Sequence record: MT811961.1 | DNA length: 64,000 nt | Direction: 5' to 3' (one strand) | Shown: piece after piece, positions 19,175-31,496 of the stretch | Numbering within the stretch: the stretch's first letter is position 1 | How the letters are laid out: every line of letters starts with the position of its first letter | The notes under the pieces: model-generated | Told to the model about the DNA's origin: nothing | Database searches by the model: none | What the model saw: only the letters and a program-made list of their open reading frames with translations | Position numbers and translations under genes: made by a program

Positions 19175-21940
19175 ATGTCCAAAAAGAATGACTGGTCAGA
19201 TGCCGCGATGACAATCCCGGTTCCGGCCAAGTCAGTTAAAGCAGGGTTGCGTCCTGTTGATGCAGAGGGAAATGTAAAAGACGACAAACCTTCGTCTTCC
19301 CTGAAACAAAAGACGCAACAGATCCGTGCTTTATTGAGTGAGCGTACAGAACAGCTGTCTACAGCAAAAGGTATTCTGGAAGTTCACCCTGACCTAAACC
19401 TAGCAAAAGAAATCACAGTGGCGCAAGTACTTGCGCCAAAAGACCTGTCTGATTTTAAATTCCGTTTGCGTGTTAACCCTGTGCTTTATCCTGGCAAGGT
19501 AAACCCAATCGCAGTAGCTCGTATTCAAGAGGTACTAAATACCCACCTAGAGCTAGAAGAAAAAGTTGGCGACTATCTCGGCGACATTCTTTATGATCAT
19601 GGTGCGGTAGTTCATCTAATCCTTCCTCCTGCACAGATCGATTCGATTGTCGGACAGATGGATTTAGAAAGCTTTGACAAAGCAAGTGCTACTGATCTGT
19701 TTGCCGATATTGGTGTACATACACACACTGACCCGGCATTGACCAAAGCAGGCATCGACGGTATTCATGATAACTACAAGTTGTTCTATCGTGATTCTTG
19801 TCGCCAGCACATCATCAACAAGAATGTGTCATCTGGTTTTGACTTTGAAAACATGTCATTTGCTACTGATCACACAGAGAAGAAAAACGAAGGCTGTCTT
19901 GTTATTGATGAGATCATCGAAGACGAGCGTCAGACACAAGCACTTCGTATTCGTTTGTCTCCGGATATCGTTATGCCACTCGGAGATCCATCGGACAAGT
20001 CAAAACACCACGGCTACTATATCCTTGCAGACGATAGTGGTCAGCTAGGTACTTCTTGTCAAGACACGGGCTTTATGAAAGACCTGTTGGCACGCATGAA
20101 GAAAGCCCTGCATGACGAAACATCTAACGAGTACACAATCATCAAAGACCTTGGCTTTATTGAAGATTCAAAAGACAAGAAAGCGAAGATGTCGTTTGAT
20201 GAACTCATGGGTCGTTGGGTTGACTTTGTTGAAAAGCCTATCCGTGAAAAGATTAAGTCTTCTGGTCTTGTTCGTGGCGACGTAGACGTTTCAGAATACC
20301 ATAACTTTTATCGTATCCTGTTGCATCGTCACTTGAAGCAAAAGAAAACTCGTCTTATCTTTGTGCCAGCTAAACTAGTTAGCTACATGGCCATGGATTA
20401 CAACGACATGGGTCAAGGTGTTTCCCTATTGGAGAAAACAGCTTACTACTCATCTATCCGTGCAATCATTCAAATTGCTGGTGTGATGAATCTAGTACAC
20501 AATGCTATTCCAGTAACCGATGTGGCAATTACCCTTGATGAAGATGACGATGACCAATTAGGAACCGTAGAAACCGTCTTGCACGAACTGAGCAAGATGA
20601 CAAGCCTTAACTTCCCTATTGGTACTATCAATCCATCGGAAATTGTAACCTCTATTCAGAGAGCCGCATATCGCGTTAAAATCGATGGCGGTACGGCATT
20701 CCCGAAAACATCTACTGAGTTATCTGATTCAGGTAAGTCTCGTGTTACGCAGATCGATACCGAAGTTGATCAACAATTGCGTCGTCTTCAGTATGCTGGT
20801 CTAGGTGTAAGTCCAGAAGCAATCGACCAATCCCTACAGGGTGAGTTTGCTACTCAGGTAATTCTAAATGACTTGTTGTCTGCAAAACGTGCAATGACAA
20901 AACAACGCAAGTTTAAGAAATGTCTGTTGGATTACATCCGCCGGGTAATTGAGTTCTCTCCTCAGTTCATCAAAGAAATCAAAGACGCTGGAATTACTGA
21001 CCCTGCTGCTTTTGTTCGTTCGCTTGAGATTGTTATGCCTACCGCAGATATGTCTCGTGTAGAACAACATGCAGACGCCTGGGATAAGATTTCTCGTTTC
21101 GTTGATGAAGTATTCCCATCGATCATTTCCGATGACATGCTTCGTGGCATGGCTGGTATTGATAGTCAATACACGCGTGACCAACTGGATGATATTCGTA
21201 ACATCTATGCATCTGCATACAAACGTCGCTACTTGAAGGACAACAATATCCTGCCGGAAATCTGGGAGCTTATTGACCCTGATAGTGAATCTGGCTTTAA
21301 CAAGGAAATCCCTGAGCACTACCGTAAGGTATTTAAAGCGATTGGTCCAACGGTTAAAGCTATTCTTAAAGGTATTGATAACAACGATGCGTTGATTCAG
21401 AAATACCTAGATAATCCAAAACGTAAGGAAGATACTGATGGCACAGATACTGGAAGCAATCCTGGTAATGCTGGGTTTGGTGGGGCTGCTCCTACTCCTG
21501 GTGCTCCTGTCCCTGGTGGGGCTGACGTGTTCGGCTCTGGCGTGGCTACTCCGTTTAGTGATGATGGCGAGCCGTTTGTTGAAGAAGACACCGGACTTGA
21601 CCTGGAGCCAGGTACAGATGATGAACCTGGTGACCCAGATGTTGCCGATCCGCTAGCAGTCACTGAAGACCCAATTGACTTGGGACTAGGTGGCGAAGAG
21701 GAAGAGGAAGCAGATCCTTTGGCTGGAGCTGAAGAAGAAACTCCTGATCCTTTAGGCGAGGAAGAAGAACCAATTGATCTTGATTTGACTGGTGAAGAGG
21801 AAGAAGACCCTGCTGACCCAGATGAAGTAGATCCTTTGGCCGGGGAACCTGAGGAAGTTCCTGAGGTTACTGACCCTGAAGACGATCCTGAATTAGACAT
21901 CGACCCAGATGATCCTGATACAGAAGATCCTCTTGCTTAA
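19175..21940 (+). CDS. probable portal protein (phiKZ gp129-type) with long acidic C-terminal tail
   Basis: 921 aa, AAAGGAG RBS. Size and synteny fit. Core motifs G.SLLEK, ITLDEDDDD..GT.E, LG.SPE.ID....EFA....NDLL. Confidence 0.65.
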   Translation: MSKKNDWSDAAMTIPVPAKSVKAGLRPVDAEGNVKDDKPSSSLKQKTQQIRALLSERTEQLSTAKGILEVHPDLNLAKEITVAQVLAPKDLSDFKFRLRVNPVLYPGKVNPIAVARIQEVLNTHLELEEKVGDYLGDILYDHGAVVHLILPPAQIDSIVGQMDLESFDKASATDLFADIGVHTHTDPALTKAGIDGIHDNYKLFYRDSCRQHIINKNVSSGFDFENMSFATDHTEKKNEGCLVIDEIIEDERQTQALRIRLSPDIVMPLGDPSDKSKHHGYYILADDSGQLGTSCQDTGFMKDLLARMKKALHDETSNEYTIIKDLGFIEDSKDKKAKMSFDELMGRWVDFVEKPIREKIKSSGLVRGDVDVSEYHNFYRILLHRHLKQKKTRLIFVPAKLVSYMAMDYNDMGQGVSLLEKTAYYSSIRAIIQIAGVMNLVHNAIPVTDVAITLDEDDDDQLGTVETVLHELSKMTSLNFPIGTINPSEIVTSIQRAAYRVKIDGGTAFPKTSTELSDSGKSRVTQIDTEVDQQLRRLQYAGLGVSPEAIDQSLQGEFATQVILNDLLSAKRAMTKQRKFKKCLLDYIRRVIEFSPQFIKEIKDAGITDPAAFVRSLEIVMPTADMSRVEQHADAWDKISRFVDEVFPSIISDDMLRGMAGIDSQYTRDQLDDIRNIYASAYKRRYLKDNNILPEIWELIDPDSESGFNKEIPEHYRKVFKAIGPTVKAILKGIDNNDALIQKYLDNPKRKEDTDGTDTGSNPGNAGFGGAAPTPGAPVPGGADVFGSGVATPFSDDGEPFVEEDTGLDLEPGTDDEPGDPDVADPLAVTEDPIDLGLGGEEEEEADPLAGAEEETPDPLGEEEEPIDLDLTGEEEEDPADPDEVDPLAGEPEEVPEVTDPEDDPELDIDPDDPDTEDPLA
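21420..21937 (+). repeat. low-complexity Asp/Glu/Pro/Gly tail with recurrent DPL(A/G) and PIDL units
   Basis: Seen in translation: DPLAV, PIDLG, DPLAG, DPLGE, PIDLD, DPLAG, DPLA*. Confidence 0.85.
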
Positions 21941-21952
21941 TAACTAACAAAA

Positions 21953-21990
21953 TGTCTGGGATCTCTTCGGAGGTCTCAGGCACTTTTTAT
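21953..21990 (+). terminator. intrinsic terminator after portal gene
   Basis: TGTCTGGGATCTC-TTCG-GAGGTCTCAGGCA followed by T-run. Confidence 0.8.
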
Positions 21991-21991
21991 C

Positions 21992-22001
21992 TCTATATTA
22001 C
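21992..22001 (+). promoter_or_regulatory. early-type promoter motif TCTATATTAC
   Basis: Recurrent motif immediately after a terminator. Confidence 0.75.
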
Positions 22002-22038: not shown

Positions 22039-22905
22039 ATGACAAAGTACAAACAAGTAAAAACAAGCCACTTCTATTTACTCAACATCACTGCCTGGGT
22101 ATTGTTAGTAATCGTTCTGTTGTTCAGCAGCACAATCAATCGCCTCTATTCTGAAAAGGTAGAGTTGAACGCTGCGTTAAACCAAGAAGAACTAACACGA
22201 GAAGAACTTGAGTCTGACTTGGAAATTCAACAACGCATCGAAGATGCATACGAAGAACGTCTGCGTATTGCGCACAAACAGATCCGTGACCTGACAGTGA
22301 AACTCAATCAAGGCAAGGAACCGTATAAACCAAAGCTTGCTTTAACTCCATTGCAGAATAAACTATGTCTAGCTATTGCGACATTTACGGAAGCGAACGG
22401 AGAACCATCAGAAGCACGTGAGACTATTGCTTGGGCAATCACAAACCGTGCCGTGGATCCACGTGGCTGGTCTGAAGATTACAAAGGTCGTTTCTACAAG
22501 AACAACATTTGTGCCGCTGTAGTAGAACGTGGTCAGTATTCTGGCATGGGTCCGTACATCACAGATATTGAAGATGTAGTATGGGGCAAGATCGATACCT
22601 TTGTTCCTGCGCTAGCCAAGAAGCAACCATCTGAAATGAAAGCATGGAAAGACATCTGGCAGATCTCGAGTGACATTATCGATGGTAAGCTTACTCGTAA
22701 AACACATGCGACTTACTTTATCTCGTGGCGTGGACTAGGCAGTAACAATCATCCAAGCTGGGTGAAATACTTCATGCCTGCATACACGTCTACTGAATCT
22801 GGTCTACATAGCCTATTCTTAGATTATGGCTACGATCGCGAAACAGGTGAAGTTGTTTACTTTACAAAAGCGAATCCATACAATCCGAACAAACATACGT
22901 TCTAA
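22039..22905 (+). CDS. membrane-anchored cell-wall hydrolase (SleB/Hydrolase_2-like) with coiled-coil stalk
   Basis: Likely start MTKYKQ at 22039 (AAAGGAA RBS). N-terminal TM, then coiled coil, then CLAIATFTEANGE....IAWAITNR...ICAAV...GQYS, the SleB signature with catalytic Glu. Confidence 0.8.
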   Translation: MTKYKQVKTSHFYLLNITAWVLLVIVLLFSSTINRLYSEKVELNAALNQEELTREELESDLEIQQRIEDAYEERLRIAHKQIRDLTVKLNQGKEPYKPKLALTPLQNKLCLAIATFTEANGEPSEARETIAWAITNRAVDPRGWSEDYKGRFYKNNICAAVVERGQYSGMGPYITDIEDVVWGKIDTFVPALAKKQPSEMKAWKDIWQISSDIIDGKLTRKTHATYFISWRGLGSNNHPSWVKYFMPAYTSTESGLHSLFLDYGYDRETGEVVYFTKANPYNPNKHTF

Positions 22906-22916
22906 GGAGCTTTATC

Positions 22917-23339
22917 ATGGAAAACATCCATGTGCTATTTCCGTTCTTTACTGGACAGCTACAAACCGAGTTGTACTTTCAAACACTCATGGCCTTTGTG
23001 GCTTTGTTCTTGTTATTCACAACTCCTTTCTCAGGAGCTAATCGAAAACTCCAGTCAGCGTCTAAGACCTGTTCGGCTATTGGCTGTCTGATACTTGTCG
23101 TCCTCTTGGCTTATCTGTGTGGCTTTGGTATCTTTGAGTATATACTCCCAGGCAAGACTGGCGGAATCATGGGATTCTTACTGGGCTACATTGCCATGCT
23201 TGAGATGATGATTCAGGCAGCACACAAAAGCAAGATACGCGGCATGTTCGTTTCGATGCGTCTTATGGTCATTGCAAAACGACTAACGATCGCTTTGGCC
23301 ATTGGTACGATCTTTTACGTACAGTGCTATCAAGTCTAG
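22917..23339 (+). CDS. polytopic membrane protein (about 4 TM)
   Basis: 140 aa, four hydrophobic segments, AAGGAG RBS. Confidence 0.75.
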   Translation: MENIHVLFPFFTGQLQTELYFQTLMAFVALFLLFTTPFSGANRKLQSASKTCSAIGCLILVVLLAYLCGFGIFEYILPGKTGGIMGFLLGYIAMLEMMIQAAHKSKIRGMFVSMRLMVIAKRLTIALAIGTIFYVQCYQV

Positions 23340-23365
23340 ATTTTGTGTTTCAACGAATCTTTATC

Positions 23366-23401
23366 TCTATATAACCTACATGGATTAGAACATATAATCC
23401 A
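23366..23401 (+). promoter_or_regulatory. early-type promoter TCTATATAAC plus leader hairpin TGGATTA-N7-TAATCCA
   Basis: TTATCTCTATATAACCTACATGGATT is identical at 23361 and 35172. Confidence 0.75.
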
Positions 23402-23488: not shown

Positions 23489-23623
23489 ATGAAATTTACG
23501 AACGGTCACGCGGTTCTAATGGGTCTTATCGCAGTAGTACTATTCTTCACTGTAGGTCAAGACAATATAGAAGCTTACAACAACCATGTAATGGAAACAA
23601 CAACTCACCAAGTAGCAGAGTAA
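23489..23623 (+). CDS. 44-aa single-TM peptide not in the ORF track
   Basis: GGAG RBS. MKFTNGHAVLMGLIAVVLFFTVGQDNIEAYNNHVMETTTHQVAE*. Codon usage like neighbouring genes. Confidence 0.75.
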   Translation: MKFTNGHAVLMGLIAVVLFFTVGQDNIEAYNNHVMETTTHQVAE

Positions 23624-23701
23624 ATAACAAAGGTTCCGAGGCCGGGGCCTTGATTATATATTTTGCGCAAACAAAAACTAATTCCTAAGAGGATCCTCAT
23701 T

Positions 23702-24118
23702 ATGAAAACTAAAATCAACACCACTGATAACTTCGTAGTACGTGCAACTAAAACTGTATGGAACGGCGTAGTAGGTTTCGTTAAACGTGTTTTTACTGGT
23801 CTACTTGATAGCGTATTTGCGGCTGTTCAACACATCGCAATTGCAATCATTGCACCTTCACCAAAGAACTTTGTTAAAGCAGTAGCACATACTGCTCGCT
23901 GTGTTACTCTATTGAGTCTTATCGTTAACCCGGCTGGTCTAATTGCATCACCGGCTACATGGGCTTTAGAGGTAGCAGTTATTACAGTCTTTACTTTTAT
24001 TTACGGCTATGCATACCTAATGCTACTTCGCATTCTAAGCAGTCTAGAAGAGATGGTTGGCTTCGCTATTACTAGCGCTGAAATCCGTCGCCGTATTCAA
24101 GTGTGGGCAGCAGCTTAA
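23702..24118 (+). CDS. MKTK-family protein, hydrophobic/membrane-associated
   Basis: Likely start MKTKINTTDN at 23702 (AAGGA RBS). Amphipathic N-terminus and hydrophobic C-half. Confidence 0.75.
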   Translation: MKTKINTTDNFVVRATKTVWNGVVGFVKRVFTGLLDSVFAAVQHIAIAIIAPSPKNFVKAVAHTARCVTLLSLIVNPAGLIASPATWALEVAVITVFTFIYGYAYLMLLRILSSLEEMVGFAITSAEIRRRIQVWAAA

Positions 24119-24133
24119 TCAAGGAAACAAACT

Positions 24134-24634
24134 ATGAAAACTAAATTAGTAAGTACGTTCAAACGTACAGTGACCACGATTAAGCGTACTGTCTTTCGTT
24201 GGTTATATAAAATCACTGGCTGGACAATCTTTGGCGAAGCTAAAGAAATCGACGAGTCACTTAAACTGACAGAGGCTCTTGAAAAAGAGCCTACTGAAAC
24301 AGATCTTAAAGATGCAGTAAATGCATTTGCAAAGGTAGTTGAGAATCTACCTAAAAAGATCTCGATCATCACGGCGCGTGCCCTAAACTGGAACGGTAAG
24401 AAACTTCAGCTGTCTATGACTGACAAACGTTCACGTGTCCGTATCGATGAGCTGTTGCTTAAACTACCATCTCCTAAAAAGTGCGATCATGATCTAACTG
24501 CTCGCAAAACTACTCGTCGTATTCTTCGTGCTGCTTTAAAGCATGCAAAGAAAGATGTGACACTAACCAATAATTTCATGTTGGCAGACGAAGCTAAAGC
24601 GGCTTTGCGTCTGTTGACTAAGAAGGAATCATAA
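24134..24634 (+). CDS. MKTK-family basic protein
   Basis: MKTKLVSTFKRTVTTIKRTVFRWLYKITGW..., AAGGAAAC RBS. Confidence 0.8.
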   Translation: MKTKLVSTFKRTVTTIKRTVFRWLYKITGWTIFGEAKEIDESLKLTEALEKEPTETDLKDAVNAFAKVVENLPKKISIITARALNWNGKKLQLSMTDKRSRVRIDELLLKLPSPKKCDHDLTARKTTRRILRAALKHAKKDVTLTNNFMLADEAKAALRLLTKKES

Positions 24635-24635
24635 C

Positions 24636-25241
24636 ATGCAATTCTTAAGGAATCTTTGGAAGGCCATTAAGTCCTTCTTTGAGGTCCTGTGTCACGGCGA
24701 ACCTAGGCGAACCAAACTCGTCAAGGAAGAGACCCCTGCCAAACCACAGGCACAGGAAGTACCAAAACCAATTAAGCGTACACGAGTAGTCAGAAGACAA
24801 GCTCCAGCTAAGCCGGCAGTAGCAGTACCACAACAACCAGTTAGTGTTGTTCCGCGTCTGTCGTTCCCAATCGATCAAAAGTCGGACATTTCGTCTGCTG
24901 CAAACAAAGTAGCAAACAAATACGTACGAGAAGTATTGGCTGGGATTACAAAGCACCTGAGTGCACTGTACGCTGTTCGTGCAGAGGACAAGGACGTAAC
25001 CAAGGCAATCCAAAACATCGAAATCCTTGGTACTGAGTATCTTCATCAGGACGACACAAAACGCATGCTGTCGACACAGATGTCGTTATTGTGTGCTTTA
25101 AGTTCTTTGCGTAATGCACTTGGTCCTGTGACCTCAATGTACATCGACAAAGAAAAGATGATCCACATCATCAATGGCCTTATCGGTCGCCTCGCTTATT
25201 CTGTAAACCACGGCGTGTTCCGCATGCCAGAAACAAACTAA
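24636..25241 (+). CDS. hypothetical protein with amphipathic N-terminal helix and Pro-rich linker
   Basis: MQFLRNLWKAIKSFFEVL..., 201 aa. Confidence 0.75.
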   Translation: MQFLRNLWKAIKSFFEVLCHGEPRRTKLVKEETPAKPQAQEVPKPIKRTRVVRRQAPAKPAVAVPQQPVSVVPRLSFPIDQKSDISSAANKVANKYVREVLAGITKHLSALYAVRAEDKDVTKAIQNIEILGTEYLHQDDTKRMLSTQMSLLCALSSLRNALGPVTSMYIDKEKMIHIINGLIGRLAYSVNHGVFRMPETN

Positions 25242-25269
25242 TTCAAATTTACCTAAAAGGAAACTTATC

Positions 25270-25524
25270 ATGAAAACTAAACTGATCGAAATCAAAAACT
25301 CTATCGTAAACTTCGTTACTGAAACTGTACCTGCGGCTATCTCTAATGTATGGACTTGGGTTAAAAGTCAAAACGTTACTAGCCTTTGGGAAAGTATCAA
25401 AGGTTTTGCTACTTCTGCCTATGAGGCGGTAAAAGGTTTCTTCTCTAATAAAGACGAAGAGAAATCTGACACCTCTGAACCAGAAGCACCTGCTGACGCA
25501 CCTGCGGATACAGCAGAACAATAA
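25270..25524 (+). CDS. MKTK-family small protein
   Basis: MKTKLIEIKNSIVNFVTETVPAAISNVWTWVKS..., AAGGAAAC RBS. Confidence 0.8.
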   Translation: MKTKLIEIKNSIVNFVTETVPAAISNVWTWVKSQNVTSLWESIKGFATSAYEAVKGFFSNKDEEKSDTSEPEAPADAPADTAEQ

Positions 25525-25585
25525 TCTTTAATGGATGGGCGACATGCCCATCCATCCTCCAAACAACACTAAAAGGAAACTCATT

Positions 25586-25993
25586 ATGAAAACTAAACTA
25601 ATCTCTGTTAAAGACGCAGTAGTAAACTTTGTTACTGTAACTGTACCAAACTTCTTCCGTGACCTATGGACTAAGTTCATTGGTCTTTTCTCTAAAGAAG
25701 ATTCGGCAGAAAAAGCTGATGCCAAAGCAGAGAAGCAAAAAGCCGCGATTGCTAAAATCAAAGAAGCCTTGCCTGAGGTAAAAGAAGAAGCAATCAAGGA
25801 TGCAGAGAAGGCTGAAATCTATGTAGCCGTTTATGTTCAACTTAAGAACAAAGAAACACTAACTGACGAAGAAGTGCGTGCTTACCGCAAAGCTATCGTC
25901 GATCTTTACAAGCACATGTCTGACAAAGAAATGCTTGACAAGATTTCTGCCGAAGTAGAAGCAGACATCAAAGCTAAAACGGCTAAGAAGTAG
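25586..25993 (+). CDS. MKTK-family protein, paralog of 25270
   Basis: Likely start MKTKLISVKDAVVNFVTVTVPNFFRDLW at 25586 with AAGGAAAC RBS. N-terminus aligns with the 25270 product. Confidence 0.8.
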   Translation: MKTKLISVKDAVVNFVTVTVPNFFRDLWTKFIGLFSKEDSAEKADAKAEKQKAAIAKIKEALPEVKEEAIKDAEKAEIYVAVYVQLKNKETLTDEEVRAYRKAIVDLYKHMSDKEMLDKISAEVEADIKAKTAKK

Positions 25994-26077
25994 CCCTTAA
26001 AGCTCATTGGGACGCCAGTGGGCTTTGTGGGAGATACTTCAGAAAATGACATCGTCATAAGCACAGAGGAAACTAAA

Positions 26078-26278
26078 ATGAAATCACAATTTGAAAACAC
26101 GGTAGACAATGAAATGGCACGCATCACTGCGGAGCTGAACATCAATGCGACTGAACGTGCATCTATTATGGATGCAGTAGCAGACCTGGGCAAGATCACA
26201 CAAGAGCCAGCAGCGGTAACGGCTATGTTCGAAACCGCACGCGAAGTTCTAAGCCGCCCTCAGCCATTCTATCTGTAG
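26078..26278 (+). CDS. small hypothetical protein
   Basis: Likely start MKSQFEN at 26078 (GAGGA RBS), 66 aa. Confidence 0.7.
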   Translation: MKSQFENTVDNEMARITAELNINATERASIMDAVADLGKITQEPAAVTAMFETAREVLSRPQPFYL

Positions 26279-26287
26279 TAACATGTA

Positions 26288-26325
26288 AAGCCCATTCTGT
26301 GTGAATGGGTTTGTCAGGTTTTTAT
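26288..26325 (+). terminator. probable intrinsic terminator
   Basis: AAGCCCATTC-TGTGT-GAATGGGTTT followed by GTTTTT. Confidence 0.55.
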
Positions 26326-26346
26326 GCGTTTCAAGAAATGTTGATG

Positions 26347-26384
26347 TCTATATAACCAGGATGATTATATGCATGTAATCATTC
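26347..26384 (+). promoter_or_regulatory. early-type promoter TCTATATAAC plus leader hairpin ATGATTA...TAATCAT
   Basis: Recurrent motif with hairpin at the same offset as other copies. Confidence 0.7.
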
Positions 26385-26442: not shown

Positions 26443-27204
26443 ATGAAAACTTTAACTGCACTTCTATCTATCGCTTCTGTTCTTTTCGCTGCTTCTGCTG
26501 GTGCTGTTGATCTATCAACAACTCATACAACAGGTACAACGACTACAACAGTAAACGTTGATCAACACGTAACTGGTACAACTAACGGTCTTGAGTTTAA
26601 CTACTCTCAAAACCGTGGTGGTGCAATGGGTGGCGTTAACAATCAATGCGGCGATGTAGCTTGTCAAGGTACTGGTAACGATACTTTAAACGTTGGTGTA
26701 TCACTAGACGTAACTGAGCGTATCGGTAAGATCGATCAGCTAACAACTGGCGTTACTACAACTCGTATCGAAAACTGTGATGTGACCGTTGCTATCGGCG
26801 GTCTATCTAACAGCCAAGGTTACCGCATGGGTTCTACTCATGGCGAAACAACAACTCAAAACCACAACACAGTTGACATCAAAACTGTTAAGATCGATAT
26901 CGCTACTCAAACTGACCTAGGTTACACTGGTTCACATGGTAGCTCTAAACTGGGTAATGACTTCACTGCGAACATCAATGGCATCGATGTAAACTCTGAA
27001 GGTAATTCTATCCCAGTAATGATCCTAGCTGATCGCATGTTGGACAACCCAAATGCAATCACAATCAACGGTCAAGATCTTAAGTCTGCTGACGTAAACG
27101 GTATGTCTATCAAGATCGATGTATCTGATCTAAACGTATACGACCAAGGTAGCTCTACTGCTGTTACTGATTCCGAGTTCACTACGCACTACGAAAACAA
27201 CTAA
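26443..27204 (+). CDS. secreted Thr/Gly/Asn-rich beta-strand protein with Sec signal peptide
   Basis: MKTLTALLSIASVLFAASAGA|V signal peptide (AxA). Strong high-expression codon bias. Confidence 0.8.
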   Translation: MKTLTALLSIASVLFAASAGAVDLSTTHTTGTTTTTVNVDQHVTGTTNGLEFNYSQNRGGAMGGVNNQCGDVACQGTGNDTLNVGVSLDVTERIGKIDQLTTGVTTTRIENCDVTVAIGGLSNSQGYRMGSTHGETTTQNHNTVDIKTVKIDIATQTDLGYTGSHGSSKLGNDFTANINGIDVNSEGNSIPVMILADRMLDNPNAITINGQDLKSADVNGMSIKIDVSDLNVYDQGSSTAVTDSEFTTHYENN

Positions 27205-27221
27205 TCTCTGATTAGGCGCTC

Positions 27222-27256
27222 GATGGGGACTGCCACTGGTAGTCCCCGTCTTTATC
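27222..27256 (+). terminator. hairpin/terminator between the two secreted-protein genes
   Basis: GATGGGGACTGCC-ACT-GGTAGTCCCCGTC followed by TTTAT. Confidence 0.6.
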
Positions 27257-27280
27257 ATAACTTTTATTTTTGGAGTTTCC

Positions 27281-27952
27281 ATGAAACAATATTTACTTGC
27301 TCTTGCTTTACTGTCTCTGTCTTCTTTCTCTTTCAGTTCGAACGCGAATGAATGTTCGACAGGTGGTTGTGGTGATAGTAACTCAAATCTGTCTGGTTCA
27401 CAAAATCAATCACAGTACAATACTTTACAGCAGTCACCGACAATGGCTTTGAATAGCTCACAGTCAAACACAGTTGTAAATGCCACGCACCAAACGAATG
27501 GATCGTTCTCGCATTCAGCGGATGGCGGTATTAACTTTGGCGGTGGTTGTCCTACCAACACACTTATCTTTACAGGTGGTGCTGGTAATAACCGCTCACA
27601 TTCTCGTCCGAGTAATTACCGTAGTGACAGCAACAACATGTATGCGGCAGTGAGTCTCGTTGTACCATTTGGTGAAGCGGTAGACAACTGTCAAGAACGC
27701 GAGGCGGTTTCTGTTAAGGCAGCCAAGTACGCATATACAAAGCTACAGGTATCTACTTGTCTTGTATTCATGCGTCAGGGCATTAACCTACAGTCACTTG
27801 CAGAAATGGATCCACAGTTCAGTATATGTCCGCGTATTGCCTTAGAAGCAGAACGTAACTTCCATGATGAGATTGGTCGTCGTGCTGTAGAGCAATACAA
27901 AAAGAATATGCAAGCCCAAGGTATCGATATCTACAAAGGCTTTCGTAAGTAA
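27281..27952 (+). CDS. secreted Cys-containing protein with signal peptide
   Basis: MKQYLLALALLSLSSFSFSSNA signal peptide, S/N/Q-rich N-region, GC..TL hairpin, YAAVSLVVPF strand, then C..C..C helical tail. Confidence 0.8.
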   Translation: MKQYLLALALLSLSSFSFSSNANECSTGGCGDSNSNLSGSQNQSQYNTLQQSPTMALNSSQSNTVVNATHQTNGSFSHSADGGINFGGGCPTNTLIFTGGAGNNRSHSRPSNYRSDSNNMYAAVSLVVPFGEAVDNCQEREAVSVKAAKYAYTKLQVSTCLVFMRQGINLQSLAEMDPQFSICPRIALEAERNFHDEIGRRAVEQYKKNMQAQGIDIYKGFRK

Positions 27953-30581: not shown

Positions 30582-31496
30582 ATGAGTATGCCAACCTGCC
30601 AAGAAATCATTAATGCAATTCGACTTAGCTGTTCGGAAAGCTGCTATGACTTCTTTTTCCTCAATGACTTTGAGGATCATTACAATCATCTGGTCAAACT
30701 AGGTTTTGATACAGATATGAAATGGGCACACTTACTTGCTCAGTTACGTCACGAGTCCGGTGGTTTTGCTTTCTTCATGGAGAATCTAAACTACTCAGAA
30801 AAAGCAGTAATGCGTGTTTGGCCTAAACGCTTTAAGACACGTGCTGGTGCTCGTAAAGTAGCTCGTAACCCACAAGCTCTAGCCAATGCGGTTTACAATG
30901 GTCGCATGGGTAACCGAATGGGTACAGACGATGGATGGAACTTCCGTGGTCGTGGTCTTATTCAATTGACTGGTCGAAACAACTATCTGGACATTACACG
31001 CAAGTTCGGTTTGGACTTTCTTAATGACCCAGATCGTTTGGCTAAACAAGCTAAGTCAATGTGGTGGGCAGCCGGTGATTTCTTTGCAACACGCAAACGT
31101 GGCGGTAAGACTCTTATTGAGTTAGCTGCTAATAATGACGTGCGCAATCTAACCCGTGCAATCAATGGTGGGTATCATGGTTTAGAAGATCGTAAAGCTT
31201 GGACTGAGTTTTACATTTCTGCTTTCCGTAATACCAGCAAGCTAGGTCGTACTAGTCTTGTTAAACGCGGCAGTCGCGGTAAGTTCACGAAGAACGTACA
31301 GCACATGCTATTCAAACTTGGTTATCTAACTAAGTCATATCAAGTCGACGGCAAATACGGTCCTTCTACTGAGGCAGCTATTAAACAGTTCCAGAAATGG
31401 GCAGACCTCAAACAGGACGGTATCGTCGGTTCAAACACATACGTCACTCTCTTCGTTCGTTATGATGAGGCGATGGACATCGAACAAAATTTCTAA
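30582..31496 (+). CDS. glycoside hydrolase family 19 lysin with C-terminal peptidoglycan-binding domain
   Basis: AHLLAQLRHESGGF..FMENLNYS, DGWNFRGRGLIQLTGRNNY, INGGYHGLEDR, and C-terminal V...Q..L......VDG.YGP.T..AI..FQ....L..DGIVG. Confidence 0.92.
   Translation: MSMPTCQEIINAIRLSCSESCYDFFFLNDFEDHYNHLVKLGFDTDMKWAHLLAQLRHESGGFAFFMENLNYSEKAVMRVWPKRFKTRAGARKVARNPQALANAVYNGRMGNRMGTDDGWNFRGRGLIQLTGRNNYLDITRKFGLDFLNDPDRLAKQAKSMWWAAGDFFATRKRGGKTLIELAANNDVRNLTRAINGGYHGLEDRKAWTEFYISAFRNTSKLGRTSLVKRGSRGKFTKNVQHMLFKLGYLTKSYQVDGKYGPSTEAAIKQFQKWADLKQDGIVGSNTYVTLFVRYDEAMDIEQNF

Follow-up and report, generated by a model that had tools for sequence, protein, structure and literature searches.

Several bacterial membrane-targeting sequences (e.g. 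those of MreB, SepF and Noc) are built as an amphipathic helix at the N-terminus with a charged linker behind it. In phage T4, the internal proteins encoded by the IP locus carry a conserved capsid-targeting sequence of about 10 residues, and the internal head proteins of phiKZ possess N-terminal propeptides that are cut at S/A/G-x-E. Nucleus-forming jumbo phages start infection inside a lipid vesicle. Here we describe a family of genes of Vibrio phage vB_pir03 (pir03), whose products share an N-terminal leader of about 20-35 residues, extending from Met1 to an F-(G/S)-x-K-E-(E/D) boundary and followed by a charged linker. All members but one reside in a 64,000-nucleotide stretch of DNA (the window) that is identical to positions 124001-188000 of the pir03 genome (MT811961.1); coordinates are those of the window, unless given as genome positions. 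The phage is a 286-kb jumbo myovirus infecting Vibrio harveyi (PMC7765460). We tentatively propose, giving the idea slightly less than an even chance, that the leader binds a membrane as an in-plane helix and is carried by rapidly evolving early accessory proteins.

Four genes of the window, all on the + strand and designated A (23702..24118), B (24134..24634), D (25270..25524) and E (25586..25993), start with the same 12 bases, ATGAAAACTAAA, which encode MKTK(L/I) and are preceded in each case by an AAGGA-type ribosome-binding site (RBS). The near identity of these starts had been pointed out in a preliminary description of the window and was fully borne out: the 12-mer is found there four times, in every case at a gene start and within a span of 1.9 kb, while 0.01 copies are expected from shuffled sequences. 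The whole 286-kb genome contains five copies, exclusively on the + strand. The fifth, in the same RBS context, opens a gene located outside the window (F; genome 260824-261837), whose 337-amino-acid (aa) product begins with MKTKL and contains an internal duplication. The pattern (I/V)VNFVT.TVP....W, earlier noticed in D and E, is part of a longer region of similarity between their N-termini, which are 58.6% identical over residues 1-29 (E-value 1e-9; IVNFVT..TVP....W included). Outside the N-terminal region, no alignment was obtained for any pair of leader-family proteins in pir03.

The preliminary description would have been refuted by a similarity limited to the RBS and the first codons. Residues 1-5 were removed and local alignments of residues 6-40 were ranked against 362 other pir03 N-termini. 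The D-E and E-F pairs (scores 69 and 38, respectively) each exceeded the entire background, several pairs were marginal (A-F, rank 2; C-F, rank 3; A-D, rank 6; B-F, rank 6-12), and A-B, A-E, B-D and B-E did not rise above it. On these ranks, the similarity reaches beyond the start in D, E and F, and the family is therefore solid for these three, with a weaker case for A, B and C, which seem to be attached loosely, mainly via F. Gene C (24636..25241, + strand) was previously listed as a fifth gene with a similar helix. Its product, starting with MQFL, indeed has an amphipathic N-terminus with the highest hydrophobic moment of the pir03 members (0.71), while its link to the family is weak. When all RBS-preceded MKT starts in pir03 are considered, they belong to leader-family genes or signal-peptide-like genes only; there are four of the latter, three with a clear signal peptide and one (genome 259255) in which it is less clear-cut.

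The proteins differ in what follows the leader, as had been stated before. A (138 aa, MKTKI) continues into three predicted transmembrane (TM) segments, B (166 aa, MKTKL) into a basic soluble domain with a net charge of +17, and C into a Pro-rich basic linker and a helical C-terminal domain (net charge +13). D (84 aa, MKTKL) has a second leader-like repeat at residues 38-67 and an acidic tail, whereas in E (135 aa, MKTKL) a leader with a KDAVVNFV core precedes a K/E-rich helical domain. The last gene of the unit is G (26078..26278, + strand), encoding a 66-aa acidic protein without a leader.

The leader family itself is not represented among the described protein families, in the literature or in annotation, and the general principle of an N-terminal amphipathic address placed on modular cargo is already known. 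All leader-family genes are annotated as encoding a "hypothetical protein". Searches of 5.8 billion proteins using words from D and E returned only their orthologues in the related phage C-ZP2022. A combined leader hidden Markov model (HMM) detected no further members anywhere in four genomes (pir03, C-ZP2022, sm033 and BONAISHI). Pfam and PHROG scans of all members from pir03, sm033 and BONAISHI revealed no family, local tape-measure matches of D aside, and searches of PDB sequences with B, C, F and a neighbouring SleB-like hydrolase (including a profile search), as well as of the ESM Atlas with B and C, gave nothing usable and no match above chance, respectively. A full-text literature search for N-terminal amphipathic helices of jumbo phages gave no result.

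The local matches of D concern tape-measure PHROGs 58, 1272 and 4200 (phrog_58, E-value 1.2e-5) and the Pfam TMP repeat PF05017, where the score of 13.9 bits lies below the 15-bit cut-off; the other members gave no match. The leader-like segments of D have aromatic residues placed 11 positions apart, and its leader-like repeat probably accounts for these PHROG and sub-threshold Pfam matches. When IMG/VR was searched with a degenerate DNA pattern of this core region of the leader, a single match was obtained, inside a tape-measure-like gene; since about 0.2 matches are expected by chance, this one is not significant on its own. The gene in question, on an unrelated contig (L071, 4092-5768), encodes a 558-aa tape-measure-like protein containing KNAIVNFVT. 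The likeness between D and tape-measure proteins, i.e. amphipathic repeats of W/F at 11-residue intervals, may be convergent.

The claim that the leaders are amphipathic was confirmed by a check of the hydrophobic moment. The best 18-residue moments of the pir03 leaders were 0.40-0.71 and those of the relatives reached 0.77, as compared with a background of 0.23 +/- 0.12, obtained from residues 2-19 of 297 pir03 open reading frames (ORFs) with a length of 100 aa or more. For 14 of the 17 proteins examined, the moment of residues 2-19 lies above the 90th percentile of this background. The best 18-mers have a net charge of 0 to +6. Their apolar face has many F, W, V and I residues; on the polar side, Lys is abundant in sm033 and BONAISHI, while more Thr, Ser and Asn are present in pir03. 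In the leaders of B-F, the TM threshold is not reached in any 19-residue window, charged residues breaking the hydrophobic core. A Sec-type signal peptide was likewise considered and rejected, because the hydrophobic stretch is interrupted by these charged residues. True TM segments follow the leader in A, in one sm033 member (L018:3509) and in two BONAISHI members (L020:17282 and 17585). AlphaFold models of A and E, computed from single sequences and used for secondary structure only, are all-helical: E would form helices at residues 8-19 and 22-32 (DSSP), and A a single helix (residues 7-50) running from the leader into the first TM segment.

The leader locus was found in three lineages only, represented by pir03/C-ZP2022, sm033 and BONAISHI. 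C-ZP2022 is 92.7% identical to pir03 at the DNA level over the region and has genes A-E in unchanged order. The other two genomes are more distant, and the genes between the conserved flanks are not orthologous to those of pir03. The flanking hydrolase is 54% identical to its pir03 counterpart in sm033 and 33% in BONAISHI. Only in sm033 does the conservation extend to a 44-aa membrane protein (73%), for which BONAISHI gave no match, and to two exported proteins (58% and 67%). At the syntenic site sm033 nevertheless carries six genes starting with MFKLF, MFNWF or MFRLI, and BONAISHI four genes starting with MFKF, MFAF or MFLF. Each of their products consists of an amphipathic helix, an F-(G/S)-K-K-E-E-like boundary and then a charged linker, and BONAISHI additionally encodes a stand-alone 49-aa leader peptide. 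The leader begins at Met1 in all members of the three lineages, in one register up to the NFV core; in pir03 E and sm033 L018:6017, the number of residues from Met1 to the common KDA(V/I)VNFV core is equal. Since such a family is retained at the corresponding site of the relatives, where the start differs and the register and core do not, the leader is more than an initiation context. This agrees with the former suggestion of a reusable N-terminal module, the cargoes being unrelated and subject to fast turnover. At the syntenic site, the family is absent from Yong XC31 and from Yong XC31-like contigs. When IMG/VR was searched with the portal protein and the hydrolase, no close relatives appeared, and a profile search gave Yong XC31-like contigs only.

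Similarity between the lineages was assessed by anchored, ungapped scoring of residues 2-24. Against the sm033 leaders, pir03 D and E outscored the complete background of about 420 N-termini, and F outscored it with one exception; all six sm033 leaders exceeded every one of the 376 BONAISHI background N-termini. An HMM built from the sm033 leaders alone placed pir03 D (E-value 0.002) and a BONAISHI member (E-value 0.001) at the top among 3,779 ORFs.

The comparison of pir03 with C-ZP2022 shows how rapidly this locus changes. Most proteins of the two phages are 92-99% identical, while a 4-TM protein encoded upstream of the leader genes and A reach 59% and 71%, respectively. In A, only three changes fall in the leader (residues 1-31), and 37 in the other 107 residues. 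The divergence of these two proteins suggests mosaic replacement or diversifying selection acting on membrane-embedded parts. Gene F and its downstream neighbour lie within a 2.2-kb segment (genome 260650-262826) that is lacking in C-ZP2022, the flanks of the segment being about 80% identical between the two phages at the DNA level. A two-gene unit, composed of a leader gene and a gene for a two-TM acidic protein of 285-288 aa, is present twice in sm033 (L018 4387-5690 and 7035-8382; 40% and 36% protein identity), which shows that segmental duplication is one route of family expansion. The sm033 duplication, the F segment and the divergence of A thus indicate that both duplication with divergence and the gain or loss of cassettes occur.

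The genome of pir03 contains a gene for chimallin (ChmA; genome 78386-80323), which matches PF25677 with 31.9 bits (cut-off 27; E-value 5.4e-8), and the closest described relative of the phage, BONAISHI, has been assigned to Chimalliviridae (PMC10587174). Judging from these two observations, pir03 is therefore a probable nucleus-forming jumbo phage. A motif, TTTCAA-N-TCTATAT(A/T)AC (core TCTATAT[AT]AC), occurs in 29 copies on the + strand and in none on the - strand, with 1.2 expected on both strands together; seven copies lie in the window (8858, 14735, 21994, 23368, 26349, 35179 and 63912) and 22 elsewhere in the genome. It fits the published early promoter consensus of phiKZ (TATATTAC) and 201phi2-1 (PMC7058600, Table 2). 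The chimallin gene has one copy 76 nucleotides (nt) ahead of it, and ChmA belongs to the early genes of this phage family (PMC12908238). The motif was not found close upstream of capsid or portal genes. A candidate late-promoter motif, CTAATTAG, is not enriched (3 found, 4.5 expected). The 29 sites could serve to define the early regulon of pir03.

Three copies of this early-type motif, all on the + strand, lie around the leader genes. The portal gene (19175-21940; a homologue of phiKZ gp129), placed just upstream of the leader locus, ends in a terminator hairpin (21953-21982), and the first motif (..TCTATATTAC; 21964..22001) comes directly after it. It heads a gene for a 288-aa protein (22039..22905) with an N-terminal TM anchor (residues 12-30), a coiled coil and a weak SleB-like cell-wall hydrolase domain (Pfam Hydrolase_2, below the cut-off in two of four orthologues, best E-value 1.2e-4), followed by the gene for the 140-aa protein with four predicted TM segments mentioned above (22917..23339). 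The second motif (TTTCAA..N..TCTATATAAC; 23348..23375) heads the leader operon, whose first gene encodes the 44-aa single-pass membrane protein (23489..23623). The third (26329..26356) heads an operon (26443-27952) of two exported proteins, with starts at 26443 and 27281. Their N-termini look like typical signal peptides by reading, the hydropathy threshold being met by that of 26443 only. All three motif positions are kept in C-ZP2022 and sm033. The first and the last are kept in BONAISHI, where the whole stretch thus forms one unit. F likewise adjoins signal-peptide genes. The best-supported reading of this arrangement is that the three operons, lying behind early-type promoters, constitute a block directed at the cell envelope.

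Several features of this region deserve separate mention. The placement of a TM-anchored SleB-like hydrolase behind an early-type promoter is an odd timing for a wall hydrolase; this protein is distinct from the endolysin (30582-31496; PG_binding_1 and a weak GH19 match), which is encoded about 5 kb downstream of the leader genes. Within the leader operon, all on the + strand, a GC-rich hairpin (23630..23651; -15.3 kcal/mol, z -2.2), present at the same place in sm033, separates the 44-aa gene from A and is a candidate attenuator, terminator or RNA stabiliser. Further hairpins follow D (25531..25555; -18.1 kcal/mol, z -5.6) and E (25998..26027; -20.5 kcal/mol, z -3.3), and a terminator-like one closes the unit (26288..26312; -19.6 kcal/mol, z -4.8). 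For two genes, GenBank seems to have chosen a start too far 5', at 21952 (in place of 22039) and at 25535 (in place of 25586). The first of these ATGs falls within the terminator hairpin of the portal gene and precedes the promoter motif, the second overlaps the hairpin after D, and the annotation of C-ZP2022 uses the downstream start for both genes. We have therefore placed the start of E at 25586, as favoured by the RBS, the hairpin and the C-ZP2022 annotation.

The first exported protein of the downstream operon provides another case of a shared gene start. A 34-nt stretch covering its first 11 signal-peptide codons (26443-26476) is identical to genome 260431-260464, i.e. the 5' coding end of a gene for a 107-aa exported protein located just upstream of F; the 5' untranslated region and the mature part of the latter are unrelated to those of 26443. 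This supports the view that the sharing of an N-terminal address has a parallel elsewhere in the pir03 genome.

In the model that we favour, the leader would act as an in-plane amphipathic helix at the N-terminus, keeping small proteins that are otherwise unrelated on the cytoplasmic side of a lipid membrane. The leader genes would then represent a fast-turnover accessory operon of a chimallin-encoding clade of Vibrio jumbo phages (pir03/C-ZP2022, sm033 and BONAISHI), apparently transcribed from a phiKZ-type early promoter amid genes for membrane and exported proteins. In this model, membrane binding, the early timing and the target membrane (either the host inner membrane or the early-infection vesicle) are inferred. 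The high hydrophobic moment, the members that run into TM segments, the membrane/exported neighbourhood and the early-type promoter in a chimallin phage are all compatible with a membrane address. Among the destinations initially proposed for the leader, a membrane would fit several of the observations, while nothing in the present evidence supports import into the phage nucleus.

A number of points weigh against this interpretation. The similarity across lineages is short and statistically modest: with residues 2-24, the signal for A, B and C is not significant, and the HMM search across genomes, proposed in the preliminary description, gave weaker results that point the same way, the pir03-only model also ranking an sm033 member first, but only with an E-value of 0.39. 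The hairpin at 23630-23651 could end early-type transcripts before A, which is the weak point of an early assignment, and no other promoter was recognised for the leader genes. The helical models are of low confidence (pLDDT 52 and 67, single sequences). Finally, an amphipathic helix could just as well mediate contacts between proteins.

This last possibility has been considered in a specific form, in which the shared helix is not a lipid-binding element but serves for docking or oligomerisation with a common protein partner, such as the chimallin shell, an import factor, a host protein or the other family members. Amphipathic helices are common as protein interfaces, the phage encodes chimallin, and the KDA(V/I)VNFV core is more sequence-specific than most lipid-binding helices require. 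We regard this explanation as unlikely, given that the start of the leader differs by lineage (MKTKL, MFKLF, MFKF) and that, outside the core, physicochemical character is kept more than sequence; moreover, several members are integral membrane proteins, and no candidate partner is kept in all three lineages (BONAISHI gave no match to the 44-aa TM protein). About equally improbable, in our opinion, is the absence of any addressing role, i.e. a set of tandem paralogues whose 5' ends resemble each other owing to gene conversion, to selection for efficient initiation of translation (A-rich early codons) or to the two combined. The whole-gene duplication in sm033 (L018 4387 and 7035) would be in line with such an origin, as would the use of the same RBS and MKT start by four other pir03 genes, three of them with clear signal peptides, and the failure of A and B to exceed the background against most members beyond MKTK(L/I). 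It would leave unexplained the significant similarity of D, E and F after removal of residues 1-5, the identical core and register in relatives with a different start codon context, the concentration of changes outside the leader of A and the amphipathicity common to 15 of the 17 proteins examined.

We consider each of the two remaining explanations quite improbable. The leader might be a capsid-targeting sequence or a cleavable propeptide that brings variable internal or ejected proteins into the prohead. The hypervariable cargo behind a conserved N-terminus resembles the T4 IP locus, the cluster lies directly 3' of the portal gene, and D matches tape-measure PHROGs locally. In addition, a T4 gp21-like prohead protease has been annotated in pir03 (PMC7765460). 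An (S/A)-x-E triplet, i.e. the cleavage pattern of the phiKZ type, is found at the leader end of B, E, F and two sm033 members, but these triplets are accounted for by the F-(G/S)-K-K-E-E helix boundary. The T4-type motif (L/I)-x-E occurs only in D (L-I-E, residues 5-7) and is lacking in A, B, E and F. No promoter was recognisable apart from the early type shared with chmA, which the capsid and portal genes lack. Several members are polytopic membrane proteins, and none matches the phiKZ internal head protein family or any virion PHROG; a role in capsid targeting or as a propeptide therefore looks less likely than that of a membrane helix. A cationic helix could also act on the membrane at the end of infection, which would make these proteins lysis-control or membrane-disrupting factors (holin-, antiholin- or disruptin-like). 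The SleB-like hydrolase and multi-TM proteins encoded upstream, the endolysin gene about 5 kb downstream, the stand-alone leader peptide of BONAISHI and the three TM segments of A are all compatible with this. Such a late role is opposed by the early-type promoter, by the sizeable soluble domains of most members and by the hypervariability of the family, which would be unusual for essential lysis genes; neither the Pfam nor the PHROG scans gave matches to holin or spanin families.

Returning to the membrane-binding helix, a narrower version may be envisaged, in which the leader is an address for the early-infection (EPI) vesicle, or for the membrane patch from which it derives, and the operon encodes a changing set of early proteins that decorate it. 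This is a rather doubtful extension, though its consequences would be considerable, as no targeting tag for that organelle would have been recognisable before this leader. The formation of the vesicle, the exchange of nucleotides and mRNA, and the passage of the genome to the nucleus are listed as open questions in a recent review (PMC12908238). With its early-type promoter, fast evolution and apparent membrane-seeking tag in common, the family offers a compact set of candidates for these questions. Even if the target were the inner membrane only, the locus would illustrate how accessory proteins of jumbo phages diversify by keeping an N-terminal address and swapping the cargo.

The T4 IP locus is similar in having a short conserved MKT N-terminus, hypervariable, lineage-specific small proteins and a plastic locus beside head genes; in pir03, however, the leader is 2-3 times longer and amphipathic, the promoter is of the early type, some members are membrane proteins, and the phage itself is phiKZ-like. 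The internal head (inner body) proteins of phiKZ (PF12699) also form a paralogue family in a chimallivirus, but the pir03 proteins are much smaller and share a 30-residue helix rather than a domain, and the PF12699 profile gave no match to A-E (at E-values up to 0.1) or to F (up to 0.01). The resemblance to the TMP repeats of tape-measure proteins, with local profile matches and aromatic residues at 11-residue spacing, concerns D only and stays below the Pfam cut-off, and the leader-family proteins, at 84-337 aa, are not tape measures. The membrane-targeting sequences of MreB, SepF and Noc show no sequence homology to the pir03 leaders, and the likeness is one of design only, membrane binding in pir03 being predicted. 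In this design, the pir03 helix would correspond to them in its position at the extreme N-terminus, its high moment, an apolar face rich in aromatic residues, the charged, flexible linker and the independent domain that follows; it differs in that some members continue into TM segments and in that one type of helix is common to a multigene family with unrelated cargo.

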